64,000 bases of DNA from Amphiscolops sp. MND2022 (GCA_964187785.1 OZ076416.1:29140001-29204000), one strand, 5' to 3'; numbered from the stretch's first letter, positions 4,292 to 54,963 are shown. Notes: generated by a model not told the origin, from the sequence alone. A program made the numbers and translations.

Positions 4292-4296
4292 AAAAA

Positions 4297-18501: not shown

Positions 18502-19382
18502 GGATGTTGCATTCGTTTCTCATACAAATCACAGCATTGGTAGCTAGTGAAATAAAGTTCTCCCCATTGGAAGGCCTTTTTACATGTAAATTGCTATTCG
18601 TTATTGGAACTAAAAGTGATTCACTCAATCTAACTTTACAATCTTCGAAGAGTTTAAAGATGCTTCTGAGATCCTTGAAGACTAAGTTGAGAGAAACTTC
18701 TGAAAACTACCGATTTCAACGTCTTGTTGTTTCCGCAAAAACTGAGAACAAAAAGTTTTCGTGATGGATAATGTTCAAACTTGCCTGGGTTTGCAATCAA
18801 TTGAATTCCATTGGTGCCCCAATAATTCTCGTGCATTTAGGGCACAAGAGCACTTTTTCAATCTCAAGGAAAACAAGATTACGCTCCGATCAGATACATT
18901 TTTCAATATTCTTTATCCTTCAAAATTGTATCTTTATTTACGCAACAGTCTCAGAAAATCGATTCCCATTCTACCGAAATCAATTTACTCCTTTCAAGGC
19001 CAGGGATTTAAATTAATTAGAAAATCCGACGGTCGTTTCTGTTTTTAAGGATGCAAATTCGACAGCCGCTGTTCAATTTATCTAGTTCTTAGAGCGTTAG
19101 TTTCGGAAAACTTAAGGTCTTCGGTTTTACTGCAGAGTTTATGCCATGATGCTCATTCAGTTTGAATAAATAGATTTCGGCTCTATCGTGGTCCGTCCGT
19201 TTTTTTAATGGTACATCGATGTCGCATATAAGAAATTCGTTGTAACGTTTTTAGTCGGCGCTTTTCTAAGGAAAAGTGCCCGACTCTTACAGTGACTAGT
19301 TTTTTTTCTTTCTTTTTTTTCGTTAGACTACAATCTCACTCTGATTGGGCCACTTTTCTTACAATCGAAACTACTAAAACTA

Positions 19383-19756
19383 CTAGCATAAGAGGCCAAG
19401 TCCGGTCAGTGGAAATTAGTGCAAAAGGGTCCCCCCTTTCATTTTTTACTTTTTTACCGTAGCCTACAAAACCGGACGAGACTAAAGGTTCCCCCCTTTC
19501 AATTTCGGCATTGTGCGACTTTTTTTTTCAAAAATATTTTAATGTATCAAAAGAGTCCCCCTTTCGAGTTTTTTGATATTTTGCAACAGAATATACGTTG
19601 ATAAAGCCCGGAGGGTCCCCCCTTTTACATTTTTCGGCACTATGCGACATTTTCTGAAAGAAAAAAAATTCAAAAATTTCAAGTTTTTTTCAAAAAACTC
19701 TTTTGCGCTTTTTGAGCCTTAGATATAGCGCCGACTTTAGACGTTCCCGTCTTGTT
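19383..19756 (-). mobile_element. Intronic non-autonomous element (Helentron/Helitron-like candidate)
   Basis: 5' AACAAGACGGGAACGTCTAAAGTCGGCGCTATATCTAAGGCTCAAA, four (A/G)AAGGGGG(A)ACC subrepeats, and a 3' weak hairpin followed by CTAG. Confidence 0.55.
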
Positions 19757-20272
19757 GACATTAAGAGGAGGAAAACGTTTTCCCATGCAATAGTTTCTTT
19801 TCAAATTTCTACATACATCTCATCCGCGTCCTTCCTCAATGTCAGCAAATAGAGAACCAGTGGAAACTTTGGGCTTGGAAAACTTGGAGAACAAAAAAAT
19901 TTACCTACCTGTTATAGGGTTTCTTTATACCCAGTAACTTGTATTTCTTTTTAGATTACAAAGGAGAGAGCAGAGCAAGAATCTATTCATTAACTAGACC
20001 ATGTGGTGAAATGGTTCACCGTTTCTTTTGGTGGTCTACGATTTTGCTGGTACTATTGACAATGTTGATAAATATATGAATAGACAACAACAGTTTGGAT
20101 ATTTGAACATACTATGATTGACAGTTATATATATGTTTCAATTAAAGTTTCTTTTAGTCTTTTTTGTCAACCCTGTCACACTTCTCCTTCTTTGCTTTCT
20201 TGGCCATCTCTGTTCGGGTATATGTTAACACAAAAATTTAGGGTTGTAGTTCGTTAGGTGTTGTTTGTAGTT

Positions 20273-21760
20273 TTATCGTAGACTGTCCTCGCTTGACGAG
20301 AGGTTGATGATTTCGGGTTTGTCCATTGTTGTGGGTTTTTCTATATCGCAGATCATTACGGTGTCTCCGTAATTTTGTGGTGCTCTTCTACTTCTTTGGG
20401 ATCTTCTTTCTCCCGTCGATGTACTCGGTTCATTGTCAGTGTCGGTGTTTTGTTCTTCATTTGTTTCTGTGGGTTCTATTTGTGTAGTCCCCCAGTTTAC
20501 CGTGGCTTTTATGGCATTTGGAGTATTTTTATGTTTTTGTATTGTCTTCTCTTCATCCTCCGATTCAAAGAAAATTTCTTGCCAGTTAGCGAGTCTTTTG
20601 AATTCCGTTGGAATTTTCTTATTTTGCTTTTTCTTCGGTGAAGTTGGGGAGTTGCATTTCTTTGGTCGCGCATTTCTACTTGGTTCATCAATGTTGGCGT
20701 CTTGTGATTGGTTGTTGGTTTGTGCTGTTTGGTATAGATTGGCCAATTTGTGTGAAGTAACCACTTCACGCTTACTCAATAGTGTTGGCAGTGATTTGCC
20801 TCTTTCTTTTATTTTGAGCGTGTGTGGTGTTTCGTTGATGATTCGGCCTTTCTTCTTCTTGTATGTTGCCTCCAGTTTTGAACCTCTGGCACGTTCTCTC
20901 ACCAGAATTTCTGAGTCCTGGTCTGCCGGAAAGTCGCTCATCTCCAGTTCGAAGTTGCTGTCTTTGTCTGAAACATTGTAGTTCGGTTGTGGTTTAGTAG
21001 TTATTATGTCTTTGACAGTAGTAAATTTTCGATTTTCATGTAGTTCCGCTGGTGACAATTTATTTTCTTTGGGGGCAGTTCGCAGTGCGTATAGTAGTTC
21101 GGATAATCCGGTGTTTTCTTTATCCAGTACTATTGTTTTATTTGCCCTTAATCGTTCGTTTATAGTGCGGATTAATCTTTCTACTTTGCCGTTGCCCCTG
21201 TGATCGTAGATTGGATAGATAATGTGTTGAATAAAATATTTACGACAAAAGTTTTGAAATTTTTCGCTTTTAAATGCTGTTCCCGGGTCTGTACGAATTC
21301 GTCGTGGGTTTCCGTTATTTGCTATATAGTTAGTTAAAAATTCTATTACTTTGGAGGTGGTGGGGGCGCGGAGAAATTTTGCGTCAGGCCAACCTGATTT
21401 ACTATCTACCGAGACTATGAGATATTTCTTTGAGCTACGTGCGATTTTGAACGGCCCCGCTAAGTCGATTGCTATTTCTTCATTTATTGTTATTGGGGTT
21501 GGGAGTTTACCGAATTGTTTTTGTTTTAAAAGAGTTAATCGACTTACCCGGATTTTGACATTCAGAGCACGACTTTGTAAGAAGTGTGATATCTCGGTGG
21601 ATACGTGGCCACCAGATATCCGAAATATGGCGTAACATTTGATCGCGGCCAGGGTGTCCCCAGTGTAATGAATTTTTGATCGGGGTTTGTAAGACTTTTG
21701 GGATTATAAGACGAGCATCTAAGTATAAGAGATCGTTTTCATCTAGTGAAAGGGAAGTAA
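20273..21760 (-). pseudogene. Element A integrase with C-terminal tail, one frameshift near 21530
   Basis: HHCC (LHWGHPG...SCSEC) lies in one frame. The DDE core (IAIDLAGPF, RTDPGTAF, NGKVERL) lies in the next frame and continues into ORF 20273-21058. Confidence 0.9.
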
Positions 21761-21817
21761 AACGTTCACGCCATGGGCTGTCGAGTGCTTTTATTTTGGC
21801 TTTTGTGGGATTCTTGA

Positions 21818-22650
21818 TTAGATTGATGATTTTTTGTAAATTTTCATCATCTTGTAATTGGCGATTAGTAAATTTTCACCGATTTTATTGGCAATTGGTA
21901 ATTTTGATTCAAAATTTTGGGAAATTGAATAACCTGCAATCGTATTGATTGAGTTTGTTTGTCCCATTTTGTTGTCGTTGTTGAATTGCAGTGTATTGCG
22001 TGCTTTGAATGAATCACGAATGCTTTCACTTTTACTGCGTTCATCGCCACGTCTCAACTTGATCCAATGGCGGCCTCTGATTGGTCCGTTGAATTCTTCA
22101 GCTAAAATGCTATTTACATTATTTACATGATTCACTGTGAACCAGTTGTTCCACAATTCTTCTGTACCTTCTATTGGAGATGGGTGTCTTGACAAGTAAT
22201 TTGCAATTCCGATCGTTCTGCCTGGAGCATGGAAGATTTCAAAATCGAAAGGAAGTAGACGATCAACCCATCTTGTGAGTCGGCTTGAGTATGTTTTGTT
22301 ACCTTTGTTACTTTTTAAAACGGTGGCTAGTGCTTTGTGGTCAGATACGACTTGGAATTTTATCCCGTATAGATAGTTTTTGAAATGCTCGACTGCCCAG
22401 ACAACCGCCAATAACTCAAGTTCATTAATTGAGTATTTTTCTTCTAATGGTGTGAGGAAACGTGAAGCGAAGTGGATTGGTCTCCAACCAATTTCTTCTT
22501 GCTGTTGTAGTACAGCACCTAAACCTGCTTTACTGGCGTCGCAAATAATTCTTATTTTTCCGCTTTTCTTGAAGTGACCTACTTCTGTAAGTTTCTTGAC
22601 TTGTTTATTTATTTCTTCGAAAGCTTTGTCATGACTTTCGGTCCAACATC
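21818..22650 (-). pseudogene. Element A RNase H
   Basis: DASK...LAVVWAVEHFKNYLYG...SDHKAL...RLTRWVDRL motifs. Confidence 0.9.
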
Positions 22651-23914
22651 ATGCTTTGTCCTGTTTCAACAATGGGCGTAATTTAAAGCATAGTTGTGCC
22701 AAATTGGGTATGAACCTGTTTAGTTGGTTCACTGCGCCCAAATACGACCTTAGTTCCTTTAAATTTTTTGGTTGAAGCTTGTCAGTTATCGCTTGAATTT
22801 TTGTGTTGATTGGCTTTATTCCTGTTTGTGTTAGGTGGTACCCTAACCATTCTATTTCGCTTTGTGCGAATTTACATTTCTCCCATTTTAGCCGTATGTT
22901 CGCTTTATCTAGTTTTTCTAGTACTTGTTTTACTCTTGCGTAATGGTCTGTTTCGCTTCCTTTTGTTACTATTAGTATGTCATCCAAAAAGACATACGTA
23001 TTTGCAATGTTGGATAATTTTTTATCCATAACTTTCTGGAACTCGGTAGGCATCACTGTGAGTCCATAGAATCCAGTGATGAAGCGATATGTTCCCGTTG
23101 CTTTGCCGCCTATTATTTGGAAATTGCAGTGGCGTGCCGTTTCCTCATCTAATGGTATTTGGCCATAGGCATATCGCATATCTAACAAAGTGTACCACGC
23201 TTGTCCGCTTTTGTTATTATCTAGTTGTTCTGCTACCATGTCTACAAGATGTTCTAAATTCGGCATTTGGTATTTGTCTTTAATTAATTCATTGTTTAGC
23301 GCGCGTGCGTCTAGTGCGACTTTTACACTTTTGTCTCGCTTTACTGTTATTACAACCGGTTGGATAAATTGTTTATCTGTTATATCTGTTACTCGTTCAA
23401 TATGTCCTTCATTCAATAGTCTTTCAATTCCTTCTTGGACCGCGTCTTGTAATTGGATAGGTACTCGTCTACCTTTCTGTTGCGTTATTTTGGCTTCTGG
23501 TTTGAATTCAATTTTTACAGTATCATCACGAATTTGTCCTTGTCTCGTGAACAAAGAGGAAAATTGGTTTTGTAGTTTAATCTTTTCGTTATTGTTATCA
23601 TTATCGTTCCAAGTTTTTGGTTTAGTTTGTTCACTTGGTTGCGTTGTTTTATTTGGTTGTTTAATATTTTGTTTAATTGTGTAAATAGCTTTGTTACCTT
23701 CGTCTTTTGTTGGAGATACGACTTTGTAGTTGAATGCATTCAACCAATCACGTCCAATTAGTGACTTCGCGCCTTTGTCTGCAATCAGTATTCGGGCTTT
23801 GTTTAGTTTGCTATCACCCACTTCTAGATGACAGAATATGTAGCCCAATAGTTGTAGCTTCCGTTTGTTGAAGTCCACATATTCCTCATCTTCTGGTAGT
23901 TCTCTGATGAACAA
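22649..23914 (-). CDS. Element A protease C-terminus and reverse transcriptase
   Basis: LIGRDWL, LDARALN, YAYGQIPL, YGLTVMPTEFQ, FLDD catalytic motif. Confidence 0.93.
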   Translation of the reverse strand: MFIRELPEDEEYVDFNKRKLQLLGYIFCHLEVGDSKLNKARILIADKGAKSLIGRDWLNAFNYKVVSPTKDEGNKAIYTIKQNIKQPNKTTQPSEQTKPKTWNDNDNNNEKIKLQNQFSSLFTRQGQIRDDTVKIEFKPEAKITQQKGRRVPIQLQDAVQEGIERLLNEGHIERVTDITDKQFIQPVVITVKRDKSVKVALDARALNNELIKDKYQMPNLEHLVDMVAEQLDNNKSGQAWYTLLDMRYAYGQIPLDEETARHCNFQIIGGKATGTYRFITGFYGLTVMPTEFQKVMDKKLSNIANTYVFLDDILIVTKGSETDHYARVKQVLEKLDKANIRLKWEKCKFAQSEIEWLGYHLTQTGIKPINTKIQAITDKLQPKNLKELRSYLGAVNQLNRFIPNLAQLCFKLRPLLKQDKA

Positions 23915-25010
23915 TGTTTTGCGCTTCTTTTTTTTATTTCATCAATAGCAAATATTGTCACGGGTGATCCAGAGTCTACCATTGTTTGAAATGGATTTCC
24001 ATTTATTTTTCTTTTCATGGTGAATTGTCCTTTGTTATCACCCTCGATCGTGAGTACTACCTTCTCGTTATCCACAATTGAATCTTCGCTGCTTTCACTC
24101 CACTCATCAATACGTTGAACACTTTGAGGAGGTTTTGCTACTTTGCGGTTTTTCGCAAATGTTCCGGCTCCTCTAGTTTGGCAACATCGGGCAAAATGTC
24201 CTTTCTTTCCGCATTTCATGCAAGTGACGCCCAAAGCTTTACACTCTTTTAAATGTTGTGGTGTAAATACTCCTTCACATCTGAAGCACTTTTTGGTGGG
24301 TCCCCATCGTTCATTGGTTTGGTTAATGTTATTCACGTCAGTTATTTCAGTTTTTATGTTTGGCTTATCTAACGTGCCAAATGATTGTTGTCTCAATGTG
24401 CCTTCCTCGTACGCAACGGCAAATTGAATTGTTTCAGCCGCTGTTGGCTTTGGTTCTGTGCACAGTTTTTGTTGAACTTCTTGATTTATCATGTTCACAG
24501 TGAAAACATCTTTCACTAAACTATCTGTTATTGTGCCAAAGTTGCACTTTGCGGCTAATCCATTTAGTTCGTTCCAGAAGTTCTTCAATGATTCGCCTTC
24601 TTTTTGTTTTCGGGATAGAAATTTGAAACGATCAAGAGTTTCATTTTTCGGCTTCTCGAAGCAGTCTTTGCAGTTCTTTAGCAGATCGGGAAGTGATATG
24701 GTTGGTATGTTGGTGGTGGGAAACTTGTCGGCGATTGATTTGCGTCCTGTTGATCCCAGTGCAAGGTAAAGTATACTGATAGCCTTCTTGGTAGCTGGTA
24801 CTTCGTCGAGATCTCCCATTAAACTTTTTTTTTATCTCCCGTTTTCATCAGTTCTGCGATTGATATGTTGTTTTTGGCCATTAATGCCACTTCGAATATA
24901 TCTCGCCATTTTTCCCATTCTAATGTAGGGTTTTTGGAGGCATCTTGCCAATAAGTTGGAAGTCCTGCTAATGCCTGGGTTCCCGTAGAAAGTTCGGCTC
25001 GCAGCGCCAT
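23824..25010 (-). pseudogene. Element A gag with CCHC knuckle and protease active site, frameshifted at poly-A runs
   Basis: MALRAEL...WEKW start, CMKCGKKGHFARCC knuckle, MVDSGSPVT protease motif. The breaks at ~24825 and ~23930 fall in A-runs. Confidence 0.9.
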
Positions 25011-25910
25011 GTTATAGGGTTTCTTTATACTCAGTAACTTGTATTTCATTTTAGATTACAAAGGAGAGAGCAGAGCAAGAATCTATTCAATAACTAGACC
25101 ATGTGGTGAAATGGTTCACCGTTTCTTTTGGTGGTCTACGATTTTGCTGGTACTATTGACAATGTTGATAAATATATAAATAGACAACAACAGTTTGGAT
25201 AATTGAACATACTATGATTGACAGTTGTATATATGTTTCAATTAAAGTTTCTTTTAGTCTTTTTTGTCAACCCTGTCACACTACCTCTGACAATATTTCG
25301 GACAAGAAAAAAATGTGGAATGCGTAGCAAAGGCTCTTGCGAAGTTTATAGCTGCAGTTTTTGGACTTCGAAGGTCCGTTTTTCCAAACCTATTGTAAGT
25401 AGCGGTATAGTCTTCCTGTAGAACATTCGGCACGACTCTCAGTTACACTTTTTATTTTGTTTCCAATAGAAGCTCTGGTGTGACGTCAACACACATTTTC
25501 AAGGTAAATACGTTCAGGTCTCTCTTGAACAAATGTATCACGTCTAGGCAACCTTTCTCATGGTCCACTAGGTGTAAGTTTTATGGCTTTAAGCGTTTGT
25601 TTGGCCAAAACATTGGGGTTTTCAAAAAATTTTGTCGGAGCATACGTAGTAATTTGCTCAGATAAAAAGTCCAAAACTGAAATTTCTCCAAATCAGGATT
25701 TTAACACCAAAATCACAGGGTAAAAACTTCCACATCAGGATTTTATTCTGTTCCTATGAAAAAAAAATTTGAAAGAAAGTTAGTTTGACATCTTGATACA
25801 GCGCATATCACGCAGATTAAAAAAATTTGTGCTACTTTGTATATATTGTATAAAAAATATTAAACTTTTCTTATTGCAAAAAAATGAGCAACATTCTTGT
25901 TGTGAACCAG

Positions 25911-26695
25911 ATTCTGAAAGCGTTAGAGCCGGTCTTCTCTGCTGGATTGTCGGCTGTCATCTTCCACACTTATCTCTCCAGCCACCAAGTTCTCTACATG
26001 ATGCTCGCAGTCTCTGGTGCCTGTCTTGCTGCCTTCAAAGACCTGCAATTTAATTGGTTCGCATTCTCCATGGCATTTCTATCCAACGTCTCTTTCGCCA
26101 CTAGAAACGTCTTTCTCAAACTATCTCCTCAAAACCAACAGTCATCACCATTGGAGCAACAGGGCAAAATATCCATATGCGCTGCCGTTTTTCTTATTCC
26201 CCATTGGTCAGTTCTATGCATGTCGAGAACCAATGAAATTGCAGAGATCTTATACGACTTAAGCATACTCAAAAACATTATCGTAGTGGCTATCTCGCAT
26301 ACAATATACAACTTTTGTTCAATCACAGTTCTATCAGATGTCGAAAATGTGGTTCAACACGCGCTCCTTAACATCATGAAACGACCTTTCGTCATTTGTG
26401 CCACGTATCTCATTGATCGACAGAATGCTGTTCTAACATTCAGCAAATGTTTGGGATTATTATTCCTTGTTGTTGGTCAAGTATTGTTCAAACTGAATTA
26501 TAAGTTTGGTTACTCACACTATATTAAAAATCCCAGCATTTTGGTTCCAAAAATAGCCTACATCTTGATAGCTATCATTCTGTTTCATTACTCAACGACT
26601 TTGGGAGACTTTGCAATGAACCAAGTCGTTTTAGGAACCAAGTCGACCAAAACTCCAATCGCAAAATCTTTCCTCAAGAATTCCCATGAAGACAA
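25911..26695 (+). CDS. Exon 2 of fusion gene: C-terminal TPT/SLC35E half plus extra hydrophobic segment
   Basis: ILKALEPVF, FNWFAFSMAFLSNVSFATRNVFLK, YNFCS...HALLNIMKRPFVI are TPT motifs. Acceptor AACCAG| at 25910; donor AA|GTTAGT at 26696 (phase 2). Confidence 0.88.
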
Positions 26696-26869
26696 GTTAG
26701 TGCATTTTTGAATTGGTTCTTTCGGGTAAGATTTGTGTGCGTTCGTTCCGAATCAAACGTATCTTACTCCAGATTCTTTTCACCCACATTTCAAATATTC
26801 GGAAACGTTTCACCTAAAATAACAAAGTAGCAACTATTAGGCGACCCGGAAAAACACGGTTTCACGGTT

Positions 26870-28680
26870 TACTTGATGACCCAAAAAACGGAACGTACAA
26901 AAAGTTTTGAGCTCTCAAAGTGTCAAATATTTGTCAACAAACGTTTCAAAGCAACGTTTAACGCTTCTGTCAATCATTCAATTTTGGTACATTTCTCAGA
27001 AGCGAAAATACTTTCACACATTGAGAGTGAGAACGAAATAACTGGTAGACTGAAGTATTTTCGATGGTTGGAGATGTGATTACGTAATATAAGCTTCAAT
27101 CAAAATAATTGATAGATAGAAATATTGGAAAGATTCTCCGTGAGGCGACATTTGTTATCAAGCGACATTTGTTATCATTTTTTTAAAAAGCGGCATTTGT
27201 TATCAAATTGAAAAAGCGACATTTGTTATCAAATCTAAAAAGGCGACATTTGTTATCATGAGTTCAATAAGCTGAAAACACGTGTCAGATTTTGTCGGAA
27301 TTATTATTATAACGTAGTCAGCAATGTTCACATACCCCTAGTGCCCTAATTGCAGGAGCGAAGCGAAGCGGAGCGACGTGCCATCTGGCATGCCTCAATA
27401 TTGCTACTTGGCGAAGGAGCCAAGTGACCGAGCCATACAACAAATATAAAGGAGACAACAGATATAGTAGACATATTTCGATAAAAAAAATGTCGCCTTT
27501 TTAGGTTTGATAACAAATTTCGCTTTTTCAATTTGATAAAAAATGTCGCTTTTTCAAAAATGATAACAAATGTCGTTTGATAACAAATGTCGCTTGATAA
27601 CAAATGTCGCTATACCAGATTCTCAGTGCTTTGTTTACAAACAATACAATTTTGAAGACGCAAAAAATTTCTGCATTCCGTTTTTTGGTTCACCTAGTAT
27701 ATTTCAACTCAAATTCAGAACCAACAATGAGTGAACAAAACATCGAAATGCGTCTCAAAACGTAGTGTGAGTCTGAACCGAGCTGTCAATCAAACGCATT
27801 TAGATCTAAGAACCAAACGCGATCTGAAACTGCTTGTGATTGAAAAATATTTTTTACTACTAGGTGAACCAAAAAACGGAACGCATAAAAATTTTTTACA
27901 GCAAAAACGTATTAATTGTAAACAAGACACTGAGAACCTTTCACTTTCTCTGTCAATCATTCTCTCACTACGTAATCAAATTTTCAACAAAGAATGATCC
28001 AAACTTTCAGAAGAGGTCTAGACATCTGTACCAGTCATTTCGTTCACACTTCTGATGAGTGAAAGTTGTTTGGCTTCGAAGAAAAGATGTCAGATTGAAT
28101 GACTGACAAGCTGAGCTCCAATGTACAGAGTTGTTTTGAAACTTTTCGTTGACAAATATTTGACATTCTGAGAGAACATAGAAATTTTGTGCGTTTTATT
28201 TTGGTTCACCTAGCAGGTCATACAAAAAACGGAACATATTAAAAATTTCGAGCTCTCAAAATATTTGTCAGCAAGTGTTTCACAACAATTTTGAACGATG
28301 CCATTTGAATTGTCAATTGTTCAAAATGACAATTTTCACACATCAAAGTGAGAACGGAATGACAGACAAAGCTGTGTAAATTTTTTCCTGAAAATTCAAA
28401 CCGTTCTTAGTTGATGCTGTGATTGCGTAATAAGAGATCCATTTGAAAATATTGACAAAAATTGAACTTTCTGTTCCTCGTTTATTAATGTTACAACTTT
28501 GAAAAGTAAGATTTTGTGCATTTCTTTTTTTTTGGTTCACGCAGAAAACTCGATGTACCGAATCTGTGTGATTTTGTCTTCGAAACTGACGTTGTTCTGA
28601 ATGGTAGACAAGTGACAAAGTGAAATTAAGAGAACTTCTGATCTCTTGTTGACAAATGTTTGCGTCATCAATTTTAGACT
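26870..28680. repeat. Array of ~100-140 bp units in alternating orientation (core CTAGGTGAACCAAAAAACGGAAC) in intron 2
   Basis: Copies at ~26875(+), 27625(-), 27858(+), 28085(-), 28215(+), 28500(-). Perfect 24-bp inverted repeat at 27676-27699 / 27858-27881. Confidence 0.75.
27145..27610. mobile_element. Foldback-type MITE with modular inverted arms
   Basis: Five copies of GCGACATTTGTTATCA on the left and six inverted copies on the right, around a ~220-bp core containing GAGCGAAGCGAAGCGGAGCG. Confidence 0.75.
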
Positions 28681-29157
28681 ATAATTTCTAGAGCCTGATT
28701 ATCTCAGTTTTGATTTGATTGACAAGTTTTCACGTACTGAAGTACAGAGCTTTGAAAAAAGTTCATTCCAGCGTTCGTTTACAAACACTGGCTATTTAAA
28801 AAACGCAAAACAAAATTCTTTCCCAGTCTGAATATTGGGTCAAATTATACTGACCCGTAAAATTAATCAGATTCCGTCACATTCAAACTTTTTTGTCGAT
28901 TCATATCATGAATACAAAAAGTTGAAATGCAAATTGTCTGTACCGTCGCTAAGATGGGAAATATTTGTTCACTGTTTTCCTGTGATCTTAAAAAGCGTTC
29001 CATACGCCATGATTTTCATGTCCTCTGGTTTTCCGTCTCTCATAATTTTGCATAATTTTCATGTTTTTCATGTTTTATCGTTTTTATTTTGAGAGGAACA
29101 CAGTTATACAATTTTGAGCAAAATTTTAACTTAGACAGATACTGTTTTGTGTTTCAG

Positions 29158-30206
29158 TAATACATTTTGGAAAGCTGATGTTTTGAATGCGAGTGTTGCA
29201 AGACCTTATGCAGTGAACTACTTGCGAGTTCGATACAGAATTCATTCCGAGAAACTTGATAGCATGCTTCCTTCAATGCAATCGTGCAAGCAAGGACTTG
29301 AAGAAAAAACGAATCTCAAACTAGTGCTTCTTACCTGCAAGGTGCTTCTTCTTCAAAATATCTCTGACCCTGAACTTCAACTTTTCAAATCACTATTTGC
29401 TGTAAATTTCCCAACATTTGTTGAGAATAGTCAGTTGAAGTTCGTCCTATTTCATTTGCTGATGAACCGCATTGTTCGTTACACCTTTGACAAAAAAGAT
29501 TTCAAACTTTTGGGTACAAGTTTGATTGATAAGAACTCAGTTCGCATGTTTTACTGGTACAATCCGCAGGACAAATTCATGAATTGGGGAGATATTTTGG
29601 GCCCTGTGATTGTGGAGAAATTGTCTCACCTTAAAGTTGTTCATACCACCAAAAAAGTACAAAATGTGTCACTTCTCTATGGAGTTGGAAGTATATTGAC
29701 CCAGGCTATGGAAGACAGGCGACCTTATGTAACCTGGGGGCCGGGGTTAATAAAAGCACCGACAGATGTTGAACTTATGGGTGCTATCAATCGAAGCAGC
29801 ATTCAATTCCAAAACGGGAAGAGGACTGCAGAGTGTCCAAAACTGCTGAGTGTCAGAGGACCTGAATCGCAAGTGGCTATGCTCGCTATGCGGGGTACTT
29901 TTGCCCAGATATCTAAAGACCCAGGACTCCTGATTTCACATATCTTTCCAGCACGGCATTTTCCAAAGCCCAAGGAAGCAGAAGTTTGCCTGATTCCTCA
30001 CTATGTTGACAAACAAATGGTGGTTAAGGTGCTAAAAGCGAATAAAACGAGCAGCAGCAAGAAGATAAAACTCATATCGGTTTCGACAATGGAAACTAAC
30101 TACAACCGCTTTGCAGAACAAGTTGCACGTGAAATTATTTCATGCCGGCGTGTTTTGTCATCCAGCTTACACGGGCTGATTGCGAGTCATGCTTATAGGA
30201 TCCCAG
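29158..30206 (+). CDS. Exon 3 of fusion gene: stem region plus polysaccharide pyruvyltransferase (ExoV-like) domain
   Basis: NWGDILGP, GVGSIL, WGPG, VRGP, DPGLL, IPHY and SSSLHGLIASHAYRIP motifs. Acceptor TGTTTCAG| at 29157 is phase-compatible with 26695 (AA+T=Asn). The donor is CAG|GCAAGC. Confidence 0.88.
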
Positions 30207-30645
30207 GCAAGCATGCTCAAAATACAATTGTTGCACCATGTTCAACACAATCAGAAATTTCAGTTTTTAAATAAATACAATAAATACACTCCGAGAGTTA
30301 AAAAAGAGAGTCAAATTGGAATTTTGATAAAAAATTGAAGAAACGGTAGATTCTCATCCTTTAATGAAACTAGAAAAATTCAATGAAAATCTTGTAAATC
30401 GATGAATTTTCTCTCGATATAAAGGAAATGTTCGTAAAAAAAATCAGCTCGTTTGCTGGCGAGAGTTCTACGTCTCGAGTTTTAAGTCTTCGATTCGCGT
30501 GAAGAATATCGACAATAAATACTATTTCCATTCACACCAATTCGAACACATTGAGAATATTCAAAATCAAAAAATCAGCAAAATCAAAATTTTTAAAATG
30601 TCAATTCAATTCTAACTTTTCCATATTGGGAATGCTTGTCTTCAG

Positions 30646-30899
30646 GTGCAGTGATTTCTCTTTCCAGTAAAATTGCAGGGGGCAACTTCAAATACCGCGA
30701 CTATTACGAATCTCTGGGGTTATACATGCACAGAGACATCATACGTCACAATTTGACAAATTTGACACGATTGAATGACGTCACATTTTTGAGTAGAATA
30801 GTTGACAACACCCCACAACCAAAATTCCCAATTAACATCGCTTCCATTATCAACACATATCCATTCAATTTACACAATTCCATGAACTACCTTCTGTAA
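30646..30899 (+). CDS. Exon 4 (last) of fusion gene: pyruvyltransferase C-terminus
   Basis: GAVISLSSKIAGGNFKYRDYYESLG matches the ExoV-type ..SDK..GG.FKF.DYY motif with correct spacing. Acceptor TCTTCAG| is preceded by a CTAAC branch-like site at ~30612. The four exons total 2418 nt = 805 aa + stop. Confidence 0.85.
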
Positions 30900-39285: not shown

Positions 39286-39294
39286 TTGCGCGTT

Positions 39295-45200: not shown

Positions 45201-45689
45201 CTTGATATCAAATGTGGAAGAAGTGGATCCCAAACCGATCTACATGGAAGAAGATAGCGTAGAGTTTCCCAGAGATAACGCGCTTGTCGTTGATGGGAGT
45301 AGATTCAACGCTGAAAAGAGAAGCACACTATATCCAGTCTAGACTAATCACATCAATGGAGAATTCTCTGTGAAAAAAAAAGATTACCAGTGACCAAACC
45401 AAAAAAAAGCCGAATTCGAATTCGTGATGAATCTGAAGGGCCTAATATCAACAACTGCAATTGACTCGCAACTAACCATGAGTTTAAGCCAGCATGCTCC
45501 GGGAGGACGGCAAAACAGCTCCAGATGGCTGTCATCTGGTAATCAAAAAGCTGTCAATAGGGTGCAGCCTTGTTTTCGTCGATAACCAGATCTTAATGCA
45601 TTCAACTTGAGAAGACGCGTGTTGATTTTCTACATTTTGGTCACGCCGCTACGATGAAGGTGATAGTCGAGGAAAAGACGTTTCGGTGT

Positions 45690-46130
45690 CTGGAAATGAT
45701 TACGGATACCGAAATCAAAATGCCAGACTGCCCAACATGATTGAAGGGCCCAAATACTCAAAAACCTTCAAACAATCCGAATCGAAATTTCAACTGACCC
45801 GAATCGAAATTCCAACCGACCCCGTCCAAACTGTTCAAGTTGATTTTATCGGAAAACTTCATAATAGCCACAACAGCAAATTGAACGGGATGGACAATCA
45901 CTGACTGCAGTGGACTGATTCGGGAAAGGGCGGACGTTAAACATTTGCAAAAAGTTGGACAGAAGTGAAAAATTTCTTGACAATTAGTTTCCATTTATAA
46001 GAATACCGAAATACATCAAGTCGGACAAAAGGAGGGACTTCAATTTGAAAATTCGAATTATAGAGGTTGAATACTGCCTATCATTCTGGTAATACCAGTT
46101 AAATAACAACATGGAATCCACGAATGCTTT
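45690..46130 (+). pseudogene. Gypsy integrase fragment
   Basis: IPTDPVQTVQVDFIGKL followed by an I.SD.G-like remnant. Confidence 0.6.
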
Positions 46131-47388: not shown

Positions 47389-47682
47389 TTATTCTTCCGT
47401 TTTATCTTCTTCAGGCTGGTTTTGTGATTCCACCGATTCTGCGAAACTAACTCGTCGATCTGTGTTTGTTTTTGGTGGTTTCTGAGAATCCTCCTTTTCT
47501 TCTGGTTTCTGCAATGTGAAAGCATCGCCACCAAGAAGCACTGCCAATTCGTTCACGTGGCCAACTTTCTCCTCCAAATCAGGCTCCGAGTAGTTCGGGG
47601 CTTCTCCCAGAGGCTGCAGGAATATTAGCAGAAAGCTGTCTTTGCATAGATTCTTCACATCCTCCGAGTGTTGAGCCAGGAG
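47389..47682 (-). CDS. Last exon of armadillo-repeat protein gene
   Basis: LLAQHSEDVKNLCKDSFLLIFLQPL completes an ARM repeat when joined in phase 0 to ...DAVHCMK (50671). Acidic tail and TAA. The acceptor TGTAAAG is weak. Confidence 0.65.
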   Translation of the reverse strand, partial: LLAQHSEDVKNLCKDSFLLIFLQPLGEAPNYSEPDLEEKVGHVNELAVLLGGDAFTLQKPEEKEDSQKPPKTNTDRRVSFAESVESQNQPEEDKTEE

Positions 47683-48247
47683 CTTTACAAATGCATTTCA
47701 TTCACGTTTAGATTGTATTTGGATTTGGATTTGTTGCAAAAAATTGTTTTAAATGAAGTTTCAAAAGCTTGACCCAATTTCTTAGTTGGGTCTATAGTTG
47801 AGAAACAGAATTTTTCTATGAAGGTAAAAAAGAAAAGGCAGTTAAAATTAGAAGTGGAATTTCGAATTTTCAAACGACTTTTTACTAACTTTAAAGTCGG
47901 GGACAAAGACCATGAATGCAAAGAATTTAGTTTCGATGACTTTCATTTCGGAGTTGGTTTTTCTTTCTTAGTTGCTTGCTCCCTCTTTGTACCTCTGAAC
48001 TTCTGTTGCGATAATTTGTTTCAAGGGCCTAGTAGAAGCTTCAGTGTGCGACAGAGCATGAAAAGATGGACAAAAAAGTCAACATGACACGTGGGCAACA
48101 AGCAGAACAGAAATACGTGGATCTTAAGCGCAAGCTTGGAGAAAGAGCTGAGTCTTATGATGTAAATCCGACAACGGGAATTTTGCAGAACTACATAACA
48201 TTTCGCTCTAAAAAACCAAGCCATGTGGCAAAATTGAAATGTCAAGA

Positions 48248-49063
48248 ATGCCCATGTTGAGCTTTCCTTGAGAATCTGTAAAGATCTGTGAGCCAATTTT
48301 CCTTGAGGATCTGTAAAGATCGTGCCACTGCTACGTAAGGACAACTGCAGATCTGCAAGGATCTTTACAGATGTTCAAAGATTTTCTGTACAGATTTCTC
48401 AGGAAATTTTTTCAAAACCTTATAGTGAAACTATGCATTTCATTTTTTAGCTTCTTCTGTAGATATTTTTGCTGACCAAGGCTCAGTCAGTTGAAACTCT
48501 CCATCATTCAAAATTCTTGAGCAGGAAATCTTGTCCCCATCACGGTAATTTTGGTGTCTGGGGAATGTTCGGTGTTGGTTATACACTGTAATTTATCCAT
48601 TTCACTTGAACTTTCCAGAAGTGGTTTTTCAACTTTGAGAGGCTCGTTTGCGATATTGACTTCGTTTTGAAGGAAGAAATTTGACATATGACAATTTTCT
48701 GGGTTGGTAGAGATGTTGATAGAGTGCTGTGGTTGTAATATTTCGGAAACATGGTTTGCTGGAGTAGTTTCAGTAATTGCCGGAAACTCGGAATACGTTA
48801 TAGTAATTTATTGGTATGGTTAATTTTTAACAAATCCTGGAATATCTGCAAGGATCTGTACAGATCTGTACAGATTCGCACAGAAATTTTCTTAAAACTT
48901 CAAATAAGACGTGTGTTTTTTTTTGGTAGAGCACTTTTTAACCAGCTAATTTCTTTTTCGAAAACTGAAATTATGACTATTCAATTTTCGAACAATCCTG
49001 AAAACGCTGTCAGGATCTGTGCAGATCTGTACAGATTCGCAGGGAGTGCTCAACATGGGTGGT
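48248..49063. mobile_element. MITE with ~40-bp imperfect TIRs and 10-bp TSD (Mutator-like)
   Basis: TIR CCCATGTTGAGC...GAATCTGTA(A/C)AGATCTG at both ends. AATGTCAAGA is duplicated at 48238-48247 and 49064-49073. Subterminal GATCTGTACA repeats. Confidence 0.8.
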
Positions 49064-49616
49064 AATGTCAAGAGATGATATATAACTTGAAACCACCAGT
49101 TGACAATTTTGGAGCCTTTTGGAAAAAGACAATAACAAAAAAGAATATAACGTTTCCAAAGAGGAAAACTGCATTATATCCTAAAAAGAAAGATCATAAA
49201 AAGGCAGCAGAAGAACTTTGATTGAAAGCAAACTGGCGCGCATCCGAAAAAGGAAAAATGTGAGGACTCCATTCTCATATTTATTTTTGCATGCGAAGTA
49301 TTTACTCTGCCGATTGTACCGGCGACTCGATCAATGTTCATGTTGATGCATCGAAATGCACAACGGCAAGCCATGCCATGTTGGTACAACGATGGGTGTA
49401 TGGGTCAACCATCATTCAATTCCTCTAAACGGAACGATGTTACTCAAGTGAGACTAATCCGATTTCACATCAGCGTCCGAGAAACCGCCCTAGCTTTGGT
49501 GGAATATGGTAGAATGAAAATCGAACTACAACTACGGTCTTACACGTTTTCGATGTTGGTCACACGCACCTACAAAATTCGTTCTATTTTTGGATAAAAA
49601 GTTGACGTAGATACCG

Positions 49617-49937
49617 TCAAGCGGAGAAACGTCGAACACAAGCTATGAAGCCAGGCGTTGATTTTTTAAATTTATAATTTCCTGAATAAATGTTTTCGAA
49701 GCGACACGAATGATCAATGAAGTAAGTTTTTTTCAGTTTCGTTAAGTATTTGACTATTTTGAGTTGAAAAGAACAGGGAAATTCTACTCCTCCATGAGTG
49801 AATGATCGAATAGGGTTAACTCGCTCCAAAAGTAAGTCGCCCATGACGAATGGTCGTTTCGTTTCGCGAAATTGAATACAATTTACACAATAATGAGAAT
49901 TTTTGTCATTTTCAGCAATTTTATCCAAGTAAACCAA
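49617..49937 (-). pseudogene. BEL/Pao integrase fragment
   Basis: CVNC..FR......MGDLLLERVNPIRSFTHGGVE...STPGFIACVRRFSA matches the Pao MGDLP.ERV.P.RPF...GVD and ST..F...LRRF motifs. Confidence 0.75.
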
Positions 49938-50670
49938 GTAAAAGACAACTGAGTTCGGTAGCAGAGAATAAGTCTAGAAAATTCTGGTGAAGGTTTTTTT
50001 ATTTATCGATGAACGTGAGCAAACGTACGTTTTAGTCGTAAAGGTTTGAAAAAAAAACATTTGAAAATTACTAATAACTAATGATTAGGATTTTTCAGCG
50101 AATTGTTCTTTTTGTCTCCTAAAGTGCTCTCAAAATGAAATAGTAGCTTTTCACCGTAGCAATTTTTCACCGATGAGACACAATTTACCACTCGAGGCCC
50201 CACCAGCCGGTTTTAGTTTGGAGGGAACGTGATTCCTTAGTTTCACTCGGAAATTTTCCTTAAATTTTTGTGATCCAGTTTCGGACAAATGTTGACAATC
50301 GTGTAAGCGTAGTATTGATCCAACTGAGTGCTACAGTTCCGTCGTACCATGCGAAACCATGAGGTATTTTAAAAAATTAAAGATAGTGTTGCAAGAACGA
50401 ACGAATCAAGGAGATCTGCGCAAAGCTCAAGTCTGACTGAGTACGACAACTAATTTTGATCGATGCGACACATGTTTTTGAGCGAAGTTTCTCTGAATGG
50501 TAACCTTTAGCTTTTTAGAAACAATATATACAACCCAAGCTAGAGCGGATTCCTGCTTACAATCTGCAGCAAAAAATGAGCAATTCCACTATTTTCATAC
50601 TTTGACTTTTCAATTGGAACCCTAGATATCTTTTTTGTGCGCTAATGAATGAAATGAGAGAGATGATTGC

Positions 50671-50839
50671 CTTCATGCAATGCACTGCATCCAGCTTGAC
50701 CCCGTCGTCATCACTGAAGTCGTTCTGGATGTACTCCACGAGGTCACTCTGGAAGCCCTTCTCCACACATTCGTCACGTGACTTCTCTGCCCGGCTCAAC
50801 AGATTGCTCAGAGTCCACAATCCGTACCGTCTGTCGTGT
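50671..50839 (-). CDS. ARM-repeat gene exon
   Basis: (R)HDRRYGLWTLSNLLSRAEKSRDECVEKG...DAVHCMK. Acceptor TTCAACAG is phase-2 compatible with 53192. The donor is AAG|GCAATC (GC). Confidence 0.78.
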
Positions 50840-53191
50840 CTGTTGAATAAAAAGTACTTCAGACTGTAAATCTAAAAATTCTAAAAGACTCTTTAGAATT
50901 TAGAATTCAAGATATTGAGATTGGAAATGAGTGTGACTTGGCTTTAAACGTTATTCCCGCTCGCCCTTCCACAGCTACATGTAGTATGAGAAAAAAGAAA
51001 ACGAAAAGAAAAGATTTTCGTATAAAGTGAATATAAAAATTTTAGTTGATGAGGTATCCAAGTGCTGAAAATGACTAGACCAAATAAAAATGGAATATCA
51101 AATGATAAAAGACAGAAATTGGGATTTATTGAAAATTTTGAAAGCTCTCCATTTGATAAATCTTCAAAGAGAGCCTTCGGTGAAATTATATTGAAAATAG
51201 ATGCACGAACGTTGTTGTTTATCATGTTTATCAATAGAAGCAGCTCAAACTTCGATTCTCTGCGGTTATCAAATTTTTATTTAGAAACAATTTAAGCCTC
51301 CCGTGATCTATATTCCACCAATTTCGCTTCATCGACAGTTCCATTGTGAGTAATTAAAATTAGTTCGTGTTCAGGAGTAAACTTTTGGAGTAAATTTATC
51401 CAAATTTTTGCCGGTATCTCCTCACTATTAAAACGTGCCCGTTGCTCGATGCTATGATTCTCATGCGGTTCTTTTGTTTCAGAATTGGGCCTGTACTCAT
51501 AAACATCGATTTTCGACCACTTGAACGTTTGTTTTCATTTCAATCTAACTTTTAAAACCAGTCAACTGTGGCATAATTGAAACTGACATTTTTGAAGATA
51601 ATGCTTCTTCTATCGGGTATCTTAGAAACAAAAGCATTCACGAAGAACTGTCATTCCTGACTTTTTGTGCTTTGAATTCGATGGGAAAATCGATGATGGA
51701 AAATAGCACGGGTGGGGGTGGTTGAAATAAGTCAGTTGATAGAGCAATGTTTCAAAACCAAAATGGTTTTTAGGGTATTCTCAACTTGATCTCTCAGCTC
51801 ATTGAACGATGAGTACAAAGTCTTTTATAATTTTTAAAATTCATGTTTCTCAATGCTGGTAAGTGAAGCATTTTCTGATTTTTGTCAGCTGCCAATCAAC
51901 TCATGGTTGGATGATTTTTGAGTGGAGTTGAGCGACCGAAAAGTGGTTGACACAAAGATTGGAATCCACGGTGCTAAGAAATGGCGGCAGGTCTTTAGTT
52001 CGGAAGTTAGAGACCCAATGTTGAAGATAACAAGACAGGAAGTTCGGTTTCTAACCTTTAACTTTTCCAAACTTTACAAATACATAAGGTTTGAAACCTA
52101 TTTAAAACCATCAGTAATTAGTACGGTACTCATTTTCCACTGTCACCCATTTATGCTAGGCAATTGTTTACTGAAACTGAACTGAAACTTTTCTGAAAAC
52201 AGAAAATTTTGGAAAAATTGTTGAAGTAGAGCGTGACTATAGACTTAGACTGTTTTAATTAATTAGTCTCATTTTTTGCTACCATATTACCTGTCAACTT
52301 AGAGCAGAAGAAACACGGGAAACAAGACACGATACTGTTTAGTTTTATTTATGCTTTCCTTTTTATACGAAGTATTAGCATACAACATGGCACAGTTATA
52401 ATAACCACAGAGGTTATACCAGATTACGATAATTTTTGTTTTGAAGTCGAATCAAATTACAGTTATAAAACCTAGTTTTTTGACAAATCCAGACTTTTTT
52501 ATTTCTCTTTACCAATATCTCAACTCTAAAACCTGCAGTCAAGAAAAAAACTTTCGGGATGAATGCCGAAGCCGTTACGGTATCCCTTAACTTTCGTAAT
52601 TTACAATTCTTCTGAAAATGTCTTTTTAAAAATGAAAAACCAAAAACATTATGCAGTGTATTTTTCCAACCATTTCCAGAAACAATGGTAGTTTCCAAAG
52701 ATGAATAACAGAGTCAATGGTACCAAATTTGCCCCAGGCGTTATTTGATACAACTTGTTGTTCGTGAGATTTTGCACGATAGTTTCCGAAAAATGCCAAA
52801 GTTCCAAATATGCTAAATGATATACGATTTTATGCAACTTTTTTTATTTCAAAACCAAAAGATACCATGCTAATTCTGATGGAAATGTAGGCGAATTTTT
52901 CTTCTGACAATGTTCTTTACAATGAATATATGAAAACTTATTAGGCTTCAAATGTATCCTCTGGAGAAATCGTGGGTCTCTAGTCTTTTCGTTTTCTAGT
53001 GAATATGATTTCTAGCTGATCATAATAAAATCAGAAGAATAAGTGAGTATCAGCTCTTTAATGCCATACTTTGCTCTGAGTTTTATTAACATGGTCCAGA
53101 AACCCTAGTTTTCACCTACCGCGGAACATTTTCACCCCACCCCCGATCCTAGAATCCTCATTCGTATGTCTGGGAAGCATTCCTTCCTTAC

Positions 53192-53407
53192 CTGTTGAGA
53201 TTGTTCTGTATCGACTTGATCAACTTCGCACACCCCCCTCTCTCCGCAACATCTACAGCCACCTCGTCCGGCTGATCGTGCATGAGGTGCCCCAGAGCAA
53301 AGGTGATCTCGGCGCCCACAGCGTGACCGTCGTATTCGTCCAAAAGCTCCATAAGCATTTTTATAACCCCAAACTTCACGCATGCGTCCTTGACCTCCCG
53401 GTTTAAT
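53192..53407 (-). CDS. ARM-repeat gene exon
   Basis: (R)LNREVKDACVKFGVIKMLMELL...EITFALGHLMH...RGGCAKLIKSI. Strong pyrimidine acceptor CCCTTTCCTCCCCATTAG and canonical donor CAG|GTAAGG. Confidence 0.85.
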
Positions 53408-53928
53408 CTAATGGGGAGGAAAGGGCAAAGGAATGACCCTCTTATATGAAATGTTCAATTTTAGTGAAGTTCTAGATGTTTAGGGTCAATGAAAATCAGT
53501 AGATCAATTCAGATAGATCAATTTACTGAAGGATGAAAAGAACTCCAAGCCAAAGAGAGGAGCAAATCTCATATTTAAATGTGTCATCGCTCATATAACT
53601 TTATTGGATTATTAGAATCAACAGGTTTCGTATAAATGACCAGAATGATCAACGCTGAATGAATGCAACGTTGATCATTGTGATCATTTATTTCAAGACT
53701 GTTGGTTCTAATAGTCTTGGACGTGTCAAACTATGTTTTCTAAAAGATCAAAGAAAAACTCGAAATCTTGTCATATGAACAATTCTATTTGGGTTTGGGT
53801 TTTTGATACCCAAAGAGAAGCAATGTCATCAAAACCCCATGGCTGACCCCGCATTCTCAAGTTTACATCAAAGAATGCCAAAAAATTTTTGATGTACTTA
53901 TTTTTAATATTTCAAAACTTAGACATTC

Positions 53929-54124
53929 CTTATAAGCGCCCCTAAAGCCACAATGCAACTTCGTTTGGTCTCGGTCTGGTATTTCTCCTTGTAGATGCGT
54001 TTCATGATGATTCCCAAACCTCCGCACTCGTAGCATTTCTGTTTGCCTTCCTCGGAAAATTCGACCACATTTTCAAGCACAGCAGCCGCCCAATGGCGTT
54101 CGTTCTCATTCGCGTTAGAATTCA
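53929..54124 (-). CDS. ARM-repeat gene exon
   Basis: ERHWAAAVLENVVEFSEEGKQKCYECGGLGIIMKRI...RSCIVALGALI. The phase-2 donor AAG|GAATGT (GA) is needed to join 53407. Confidence 0.8.
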
Positions 54125-54728
54125 CTGATCCAAATGTGCATGTGAAAAAATGGGAAACATTCCGGCGAAAAGTCTTTTTTTTATTAAAAAAACGAATTAC
54201 GTGGGGGGGTCTGTTCACAAATTTTAGGCACAAGAGCCCAGTCTCCTCTTTGTGACCCAAAAGCTACAATTTAGCATGTTTTTTAATACAGTTTTCTATT
54301 GAAGGAGCCTTGCTGATTCTTATAAATGGATTTTTAGGAAGGTTAAAAAGTTTTATTAGCCAGGTTAGTTTGTTTTGAGCGAAATAAAAAACCTGCGTAG
54401 TTTCACGTGATACAGGTGAGAATTGATAATTTAGATTCGTCCAAAGTTTTTTTCGAAAAAAATTGTTTCGATAGAGCTTTGAAATAACCGTCTTTCAAAT
54501 CTTTCAATTGCTTCCATCTTTCATTCGAAGTATCATTCAATCGACTGAAGAACCTTTTTAGACTGACAAGGTCTGTTATAGATATCAGTTTTTCATCTAA
54601 ACACTCAGTACGTATTGATTATCCAATGAAAATTGTTTTTTCCTTTTTTTAAACATATCTCTTTTCACATGCCTGGCTTCAATAGAATTTTTTTGATGAT
54701 GTCAGCATTGGCTAGGTCCGTACAGAAC

Positions 54729-54836
54729 TCGTAATTGTGTCGACTGCGGTAAAACACTTCTCGAAGCTGATTGGCTCTTGTCTTAGAGCCAGTCTGAGTT
54801 TGTTCCAACCGCTCAATAGCAGCTTCTGCGCTGGGT
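54729..54836 (-). CDS. Probable ARM-gene exon
   Basis: Acceptor TTTTTTTCAG, open helical peptide PAQKLLLSGWNKLRLALRQ. The phase-1 donor CGA|GTTCTG is weak. Confidence 0.5.
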
Positions 54837-54963
54837 CTGAAAAAAATATGACATAAAAAGAATTTGCCACTGCTTTTGTGTCCTCGCTATACCTTTGATA
54901 ACGAGTTGCGATGTATATAGGTTTTTTGTTGATTATAAACAATACGTTTCATTCAAAACGCTC

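Follow-up and report, generated by a model that had tools for sequence, protein, structure and literature searches.

How can an intron whose second base is not T still be recognized and removed? The question is raised by a 64-kb stretch of the genome of the acoel Amphiscolops sp. MND2022 (the window: G000:C8:29140001-29204000, from a 1.07-Gb assembly), which is eukaryotic, 39.5% G+C and free of Ns, and which holds LTR (long terminal repeat) retrotransposons and three host gene units: a TPT/SLC35-like transporter, a polysaccharide pyruvyltransferase, and an armadillo-repeat (ARM) gene. A sequence-only reading had listed five non-GT donors in these genes, counted them as 4 to 5 of 8, and taken that share as the sign of a lineage-wide spliceosome change that relaxes position +2. 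Each of the five donor hexamers is present at its position and strand. Three of these donors hold (GG 18502, GC 30207, and GA 53928), while two do not (GC 50670 and GA 54963), and a GC donor at 54672, absent from that list, is supported in addition. The account that we favor, and regard as fairly probable, is that these are true GG-, GC-, and GA-AG introns removed by the ordinary major spliceosome, with a near-perfect donor and a clasp, a helix that pairs the two ends of the intron, compensating for the odd base.

Junctions in the three host genes

Junctions were read from genomic DNA, with protein-level comparison for GG 18502 and GC 30207 (coordinates in Table 1; a slash marks a splice junction). 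Assembly error at the donors is excluded, as Logan contigs, the second haplotype, and the TPT paralogs all concur. Logan contigs from four DNA runs show no variant letter at 50670, 53927/8, 54962/3, or 54671/2 over the interval 50400-55300. For the window's own locus, a contig of the second haplotype (L070, ERZ25074608) carries the GC donor of the 30207 site unchanged, and contigs from that assembly, the second one public for this organism, are identical to the TPT paralog loci.

The GG donor at 18502 is strongly supported by homology. A tblastn alignment of the intronless homolog P0004 with exon 1 runs up to Q117, at 18501, and resumes in exon 2; P0004, P0005, and P0006 are uninterrupted over the join (...SVS(L/V)NQ(V/I)(L/I)KALEP...), so that the intronless homologs set it exactly. 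P0004, from another organism, is a single open reading frame (ORF) in its own contig, while P0006 matches L009, an intronless paralog in the genome studied here. Five TPT paralogs are present in this genome, and four of them have an intron at this codon, all with AACCAG/GGATG; L009 is the fifth. The four introns, of 685, 801, 2118, and 7409 nt, are mostly unalignable with each other, those of 685 to 2118 nt being the ones without the LTR retrotransposon. The nearest in-frame GT donors, 18487 and 18493, the latter named as a rival by the sequence-only reading, would cost two or four conserved residues and have flank scores of about -12, versus +7.7 at GG 18502 (donor matrix, see below). Because the direct repeat AACCAG stands at both the exon end (18496-18501) and the intron end (25905-25910), and persists in three of these four paralogs, the cut could be placed up to 6 nt leftward; among the possible placements, only GG...AG retains both the +1 G and the 3' AG.

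The GC donor at 30207 is strongly supported as well, again by intronless homologs. P0159 (450 aa) and P0160 (420 aa), both from another species, are stand-alone single ORFs with their own start codons, and their sequence ...SSSLHGLI(A/V)SH(A/S)(F/Y)GI(R/P)GAI(F/I)S(I/L)S(S/D)KI(T/V)GG(N/D)FKYRDYYES(L/I)G... matches ...HAYRIP followed by G and AVISLSSKIAGGNFKYRDYYESLG. When all in-frame joins were enumerated without bias, the GC-AG join 30207..30645 came out on top with a score of 106, versus 85 for the best GT-AG join. No part of the pyruvyltransferase is better conserved than the exon 3' of the intron. Within the loci examined, a search for paralogs of this intron found only N-terminal parts of the gene.

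The ARM gene has no detectable relatives: no paralogs were found in the genome, no homologs in the protein collection, and no synteny match in the loci examined, and the PDB yielded only a designed ARM protein. Therefore, internal evidence was used, namely, the donor matrix, frames and repeat spacing, and single-nucleotide polymorphisms (SNPs). The spliced model E2-E3-E4-E5 reads through 248 codons with zero stops. Its GC-AG intron 54672..54125 is the additional supported non-GT intron; the best GT alternative to this donor scores -0.9 and inserts junk residues. For the next junction, GA 53928 is the best candidate and is moderately supported. Its flank score is 6.1, versus -2.9 to -4.8 for frame-compatible GT donors, and its acceptor is the first AG past the pyrimidine tract. 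With the GA join, the L-to-G spacing from ALGAL into the next repeat is 14 residues, which matches the gene's following repeat; it is 11 residues with the GT-AG rival 53924..53395, a weak one whose donor the sequence-only reading had itself named. The junction between E4 and E5 was located by phase and ARM spacing; with the GT-AG join 53191..50840 (donor flank score, 7.3), W23 and LSNL 25-28 fall at consensus ARM positions. Four heterozygous SNPs in E4 bear on the frame: in the ARM frame two are silent and the others are I>V and D>E, while in the other open frame all four are non-conservative (Y>C, R>G, G>R, and A>T).

Two of the donors in the original list fared less well. GC 50670 is weak as a splice donor: it scores 2.3 on the donor matrix, a search for an exon behind it found none, and the frame continues past it as a plausible ARM helix 3 that may run through to a GT at 50560. 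GA 54963 is probably not a splice donor, because it has phase 1, whereas the sole good acceptor, 54837, requires phase 2; it also lies in a local hairpin. A palindrome, CAAAACGCCCCTTTGAAAGGAGCGTTTTG, overlaps it on the minus strand (54940-54990).

Several features of the loci were noted alongside. The TPT paralogs lie at C1:89.52 Mb, C8:29.02 Mb, C8:29.09 Mb, and C6:50.21 Mb of the assembly (G000) and in the window, three of them within 150 kb on C8. A pyruvyltransferase-like ORF follows several of them, and the two genes look like a tandemly amplified pair. Between these genes, the second haplotype carries an LTR retrotransposon of ~5 kb with reverse transcriptase and integrase (L070:4504-9389, compared with window 26712-29134) that is absent from the window and is a transposon insertion polymorphism. 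The reads hold two haplotypes, as the four SNPs in E4 (53260-53394) also attest, and the GA-AG intron has five SNPs within 55 nt (53746-53800).

Pairing between the intron ends

For each intron, the segment from exon position -3 to intron position +14 was folded with the intron's final 45 nt. All four supported non-GT introns of the window form a terminal helix: 12 bp at -17.4 kcal/mol in the TPT GG intron, 10+5 bp at -19.0 kcal/mol in the pyruvyltransferase GC intron, 13 perfect bp at -17.6 kcal/mol in the ARM GC intron 54672, and 8+2 bp at -11.6 kcal/mol in the ARM GA intron 53928. The GT introns of the Prp8 gene (n = 30), which served as the comparison, have a median of -6.9 and a best value of -13.3 kcal/mol (Mann-Whitney p = 0.0009 versus the non-GT introns). 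The TPT helix is the best of 202 windows in its intron, and the terminal window is likewise the best of all same-intron windows in each of the four TPT copies, in the pyruvyltransferase intron, and in the ARM GC intron; among GC introns (two in the window and two in Prp8), this is so in three of four. The ARM GT-AG intron 53191 has no helix (-5.1 kcal/mol, with 72% of interior windows equally good). Scans for a clasp that would single out acceptors for GT 53191, GC 50670, and GA 54963 returned many chance matches, at -10 to -14 kcal/mol, and were not decisive.

In the four non-GT introns, the helix spans 9 to 15 bp, with its 3' arm situated 4 to 25 nt upstream of the 3' splice site. Every helix pairs the odd +2 base (G:C or G:U, C:G, and A:U), and the arm sequences of the four introns are unrelated to each other. 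Among the TPT paralogs the two arms covary: position +7 is paired as T:A, C:G, or A:T, position +8 as G:C or A:T, and position +6 as T:A, T:G, or C:G. The G-U pairs make sense solely in sense-strand RNA. Compensatory changes combined with such pairs point to selection on an RNA helix, and in this one intron family the covariation argues for it.

From these observations we infer that RNA is spliced at the non-GT sites and that the helix aids the reaction. The missing U at +2 would be offset by the near-perfect donor consensus at -2, -1, and +3 to +6, by the normal AG 3' end, and by the clasp, an intron-specific segment upstream of the 3' splice site that would pair with the intron's own donor from -3 to about +9/+14, the odd +2 base included. 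In joining both intron ends and the branch region, the clasp would mark the donor, so that pairing of U1 with +2 would matter less for recognizing it; before U6 could bind, the helix would need to come apart. As each non-GT intron carries a private complement of its own donor, an explanation in cis appears more likely than a relaxed spliceosome. It is a further step, possible yet doubtful in our judgment, to propose that acoels possess a class of introns that set their own 5' splice site in cis, in which an anti-donor element does part of the job of U1 and thereby frees +2.

Donor strength, frequency, and spliceosomal RNAs

The Prp8 gene (G000:C4:84100663-84188673; 33 exons, 88 kb) was rebuilt against P0048 with every in-frame join scored, three junctions being settled by eye as GT-AG. 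The donor matrix was derived from its 32 introns, with +1 and +2 omitted. Real Prp8 donors score 5.5 +/- 2.4 on it, versus -6.6 +/- 4.7 for background GT sites in the Prp8 region. The supported non-GT donors all score above the Prp8 mean (7.7 at 18502, 9.2 at 30207, 8.1 at 54672, and 6.1 at 53928); the Prp8 GC donors score 8.5 and 7.5, and the Prp8 GT donors 5.3 +/- 2.3. In the window, just 0.3% of the G[ACG] sites have a flank score of 6 or more, and the rival frame-compatible GT donors are background-like, at -12 to -0.9. Consistent with the sequence-only reading, the non-GT donors belong to genes that look functional, they follow exonic AG, and their other positions are closer to the consensus than those of the average GT donor, which fits compensation through stronger pairing. 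In the Prp8 region, where exons are G+C-rich and introns A+T-rich, the tracts before the 3' splice sites are T/G-rich (TTGTTGTTGCAG) and not C/T-rich; nothing conserved was found in the flanks of the gene.

The non-GT rate is highly uneven between genes. Prp8 has 30 GT-AG and 2 GC-AG introns among its 32, with no GA or GG, versus 4 non-GT donors among the 5 supported ones in the window (Fisher p = 0.001). GC-AG introns, at 2 of 32 in Prp8, exceed the usual rate of about 1% (binomial p = 0.04) and make up 2 of the 5 in the window; pooled over window and Prp8, GA and GG account for 2 of 37 introns. Given the Prp8 counts, the share of 4 to 5 of 8 is not a genome-wide rate; two of the five donors behind it do not hold. 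The old introns of the conserved Prp8 gene are almost all GT-AG. The TPT and pyruvyltransferase introns, the only two that can be dated, are missing in the homologs of another species, and the TPT intron is also missing in the paralog L009, which suggests that non-GT donors reside mainly in lineage-specific introns.

The RNAs that read the donor show no sign of a change. In each of the 20 U1 genes read, position 7, which pairs with +2U, is still A; most of these genes begin AUACUUACCUG, and the variants alter positions 3, 6, or 9 or have a different 5' end. The U6 ACAGAGA is intact. Neither U1 position 7 nor U6 ACAGAGA, therefore, holds a compensating variant of the kind that the proposal of a lineage-wide change had led one to look for, and the Prp8 introns give no sign of such a change either. 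At -2, -1, +1, and +3 to +6 the four non-GT donors fit AG/GURAGU, leaving +2 unpaired with U1 A7, and the introns end in CAG or TAG after T/G- or C/T-rich tracts. The donors GGATGT, GCAAGC, GCATGT, and GAATGT are unlike the U12-type /RTATCCTT. A search of the assembly for U12 small nuclear RNA (snRNA) gave no match, a weak negative with 43 candidates scored.

The U1 loci (L016-L035) fall into at least three sequence families, with many copies clustered on C12; the 5'-end variants are AUACUAACCUG (three copies), AUACUUACUUG, and AUUCUUACCUG, and two copies have the aberrant start AAAUAUUUAAACCUG. The spliced-leader (SL) 32-mer published for the acoel Symsagittifera roscoffensis (PMC9911081) has exact matches in this genome, which by this sign belongs to S. 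roscoffensis or a very close relative. With up to 3 mismatches allowed, ~2,378 matches are distributed over all large contigs, versus 0 for a control pattern. So many copies seem too many for SL RNA genes alone, and their number suggests SL-bearing retrocopies or a leader-carrying repeat.

Table 1. Features of the three host genes, their introns, and the terminal helices (window positions)
Feature	Position	Strand	Evidence or remark
TPT/SLC35-like transporter	exon 1 to 18501, exon 2 from 25911	+	
TPT/SLC35-like coding exon 1, ATG to ...VSVNQ	18124..18501	+	tblastn of intronless homologs P0004-P0006 stops exactly at 18501
TPT helix 5' arm, CAG/GGATGTTGC, positions -3..+9	18499..18510	+	duplex with 25888-25899, -17.4 kcal/mol
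GG-AG intron, 7409 nt, CAG/GGATGT ... GTGAACCAG/ATT	18502..25910	+	homologs, paralogs, flank score
LTR retrotransposon open frames (gag, RT [reverse transcriptase], integrase), inside GG-AG intron	20276..24831	-	ORF list
TPT helix 3' arm, GCAACATTCTTG, 11 nt before 3' splice site	25888..25899	+	duplex energy, covariation
TPT coding exon 2 and stop codon	25911..26711	+	Pfam TPT E = 4e-24, profile positions 95-290; homologs
Polysaccharide pyruvyltransferase	29135-30896	+	
Pyruvyltransferase (PS_pyruv_trans) large exon, end ...HAYRIP(G)	29135..30206	+	Pfam; 47% identity to P0159 and P0160
GC-intron helix 5' arm, AG/GCAAGCATGCTCAA	30205..30220	+	-19.0 kcal/mol with 30625-30642
GC-AG intron, 439 nt, CAG/GCAAGC ... 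CTTCAG/GT	30207..30645	+	join scores with two intronless homologs
GC-intron helix 3' arm, ATTGGGAATGCTTGTCTT, outer bases unpaired	30625..30642	+	duplex with 30205-30220
Pyruvyltransferase last exon and stop codon, GAVISLSSKIAGGNFKYRDYYESLG...	30646..30899	+	63-65% identity to P0159/P0160 C-termini
ARM gene	about 54836-50671	-	
Claimed GA donor 54963 in local hairpin	54940..54990	-	phase conflict with acceptor 54837
ARM exon E2	54673..54836	-	open frame; part of spliced model E2-E5
54672 helix 5' arm, GCATGTGAAAAGA, perfect 13 bp	54660..54672	-	-17.6 kcal/mol, z = -7 versus mismatched intron ends
GC-AG intron, 548 nt, CAG/GCATGT ... GGATCAG/TG	54125..54672	-	donor flank score 8.1
54672 helix 3' arm, TTTTTTCACATGC, 13 nt before 3' splice site	54138..54150	-	duplex
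ARM exon E3, ...CIVALGALI+AG	53929..54124	-	frame
GA-AG intron (candidate), 521 nt, AAG/GAATGT ... CCCCATTAG/A	53408..53928	-	flank score 6.1, repeat spacing, helix AAG/GAATG with CATTCCTT
ARM exon E4	53192..53407	-	weak Arm match, designed-ARM match, four SNPs
GT-AG intron, 2352 nt, CAG/GTAAGG ... TTCAACAG/A	50840..53191	-	exact ARM spacing restored; no terminal helix
ARM exon E5, 3' end not fixed (weak GC donor 50670)	50671..50839	-	frame

Alternatives, meaning, and known systems

The helices may instead be fossils of the way in which the introns arose, from inverted-repeat insertions resembling miniature inverted-repeat transposable elements or introners, or from inverted duplication in the course of repair, with complementarity that has yet to decay and donors tolerated by other means. 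We consider this unlikely. In its favor, an inverted repeat with a short direct repeat at the borders is the architecture of Amoebophrya introners (PMC7789003), AACCAG is common to exon end and intron end in three TPT copies, and both datable introns are absent from the other species. Inverted repeats occur in all four introns, and a direct repeat longer than CAG, namely, AACCAG, in TPT alone; in the others it amounts to no more than the CAG consensus. Against this origin speak the unrelated arms of the four introns and the two-sided compensatory changes, with their sense-strand G-U pairs, that have kept the TPT helix in three paralog lineages. A genome search with the 685-nt TPT paralog intron matched only the paralogs, apart from two short matches of 74%; with no additional copies in the genome, the TPT intron as an introner element was ruled out. 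A spliceosome changed throughout the lineage, in which +2 is relaxed and stronger U1/U6 pairing elsewhere suffices, is in our view improbable. The AG before the non-GT donors, their retained +3 to +6, and the raised GC-AG frequency in Prp8 speak in its favor, and it has precedents in Eurytemora and Oikopleura (PMC7072748) and in tunicates reported to have altered U2AF and snRNA modification (PMC13326754). It is at odds with the U1 copies, whose variants spare A7, with the intact U6, and with the lack of GA and GG in Prp8, and a global change would leave the intron-specific complement to the odd base unexplained.

Mis-modelled exons, with the real junctions at nearby canonical sites or in small unseen exons, are very improbable overall. 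They have most to offer in the ARM gene, where GA 53928 faces the GT at 53924 with the AG at 53395, GC 50670 is possibly read through to the GT at 50560, and GA 54963 is out of phase. At 18502 and 30207, by contrast, intronless homologs fix the joins, the best pyruvyltransferase GT-AG join being 21 points lower and the nearest in-frame TPT GT donors removing conserved residues; the alternative GT donors resemble background, and a chance look-alike would not be expected in four paralogs or together with a covarying helix. Removal outside the spliceosome, by a helix-reading RNA pathway such as that proposed for Euglena or by somatic excision of DNA, strikes us as the remotest of the alternatives. 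Euglenid nonconventional introns are typified by a helix together with a non-canonical border (PMC12501133), and the weak negative for U12 snRNA could be cited in the same sense. All cases, though, keep spliceosomal signals, namely, the +1 G, the 3' AG, the T/G-rich tract, and a donor close to the consensus; between helix and 3' end lie anywhere from 4 to 20 nt, which implies no fixed cutting geometry; and no skipped (intron-less) form across the ARM introns was seen in the DNA contigs of four runs.

Several points weigh against the compensated, clasped donor that we prefer. U1 would ordinarily be impeded by a helix that covers the 5' splice site, so that the help we propose is not self-evident. 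Of the two Prp8 GC introns, one lacks a notable helix, and the helices could be leftovers of intron origin. The sample is small, with four independent non-GT introns and 31 GT controls, 30 of which come from one gene. An acceptor matrix from the 32 Prp8 sites gives low scores to the acceptors of some non-GT introns, although this matrix penalizes C-rich tracts and is unreliable for ranking acceptors. The ARM junctions depend on reading frames, on scores of the sites, on the spacing of the repeats, and on four SNPs, and the rival 53924..53395 to GA 53928 keeps the frame.

Very few animals are known to use GA and GG donors with appreciable frequency, and an acoel, if our reading is right, would be a third and distant animal lineage that does. 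The reading would also supply a testable mechanism by which a spliceosome with normal U1 and U6 handles odd donors, and possibly a way for newly gained introns to become spliceable. For annotation the consequence is practical: gene finders and mappers restricted to GT-AG, GC-AG, and AT-AC will break or truncate such acoel genes, and the public ORF calls at these loci are indeed exon fragments (P0001 and P0158). Annotation and orthology work in Xenacoelomorpha would need non-canonical donors enabled.

In the literature searched, we found no paper on non-canonical donors in acoels or on such introns in Xenacoelomorpha, and the S. roscoffensis genome paper makes no mention of them (PMC9911081). 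The closest animal parallels come from a copepod, Eurytemora affinis, and a larvacean, Oikopleura dioica, whose GA-AG and GG-AG introns (PMC5714493, PMC7072748) have in common with those described here (CAG/GGATGT at 18502 and AAG/GAATGT at 53928) the +1 G, A or G at +2, the 3' AG, the exonic AG, and A at +3 (PMC7072748). The acoel introns differ in their xenacoelomorph host, in the terminal helix, which is undescribed in those species, and in that GC is here as common as GA and GG together. GC-AG introns are the major non-canonical class in animals and plants, at about 1%, and a stronger consensus elsewhere compensates for their +2 base; here their frequency looks higher, and three of four have the helix as the best window. 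The larvacean Fritillaria borealis goes much further, with 95% of its introns escaping the GT/AG rule, which is reportedly due to U2AF divergence and to m6A changes in U1 and U6 (PMC13326754). Fritillaria, like other tunicates, resembles our case as an animal lineage that widely breaks the rule while splicing by the major spliceosome; it differs in that most old introns are canonical here and a cis helix accompanies the exceptions.

Pairing within an intron that bridges its ends is also familiar. In yeast, "zipper" stems between the 5' splice site and the branchpoint do so, and replace or assist a protein or small nuclear ribonucleoprotein step. These stems and the teleost helices of Lin et al. 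2016 are reportedly formed by simple repeats or are internal to the intron, and leave the GT donor free; the arm described here, in contrast, is intron-specific and contains the non-canonical donor. With the structured teleost introns of the (AC)n...(GT)n type, the common feature is intramolecular pairing across the ends of a spliceosomal intron (PMC4691745).

Among protists, Amoebophrya introners have inverted repeats of 8 to 20 nt that pair the intron ends, direct repeats at their borders, and non-GT ends, and they favor less conserved genes (PMC7789003). In contrast to those introns, with their highly variable borders, which have no fixed G...AG, and many repeated families, the acoel introns keep the +1 G and the AG, and the TPT intron that was tested is single-copy. 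The euglenid nonconventional introns carry a CAG/CTG motif at fixed spacers, of 3 nt at the 5' end and of 5 to 6 nt at the 3' end, and have no donor consensus (PMC12501133); they and the intermediate introns share with ours the pairing near both borders and the non-GT ends (PMC12501133, PMC4770533). The acoel helix, unlike theirs, covers the donor itself (-3 to +9/+14), with a spacer that varies from 4 to 20 nt and with donor consensus and AG kept, which places these introns outside that class. Should the clasp prove to act as we propose, introns defined in cis would give animals a counterpart to the helix-dependent introns known from euglenids and Amoebophrya, and would connect the introns of animals with those of protists that depend on structure.

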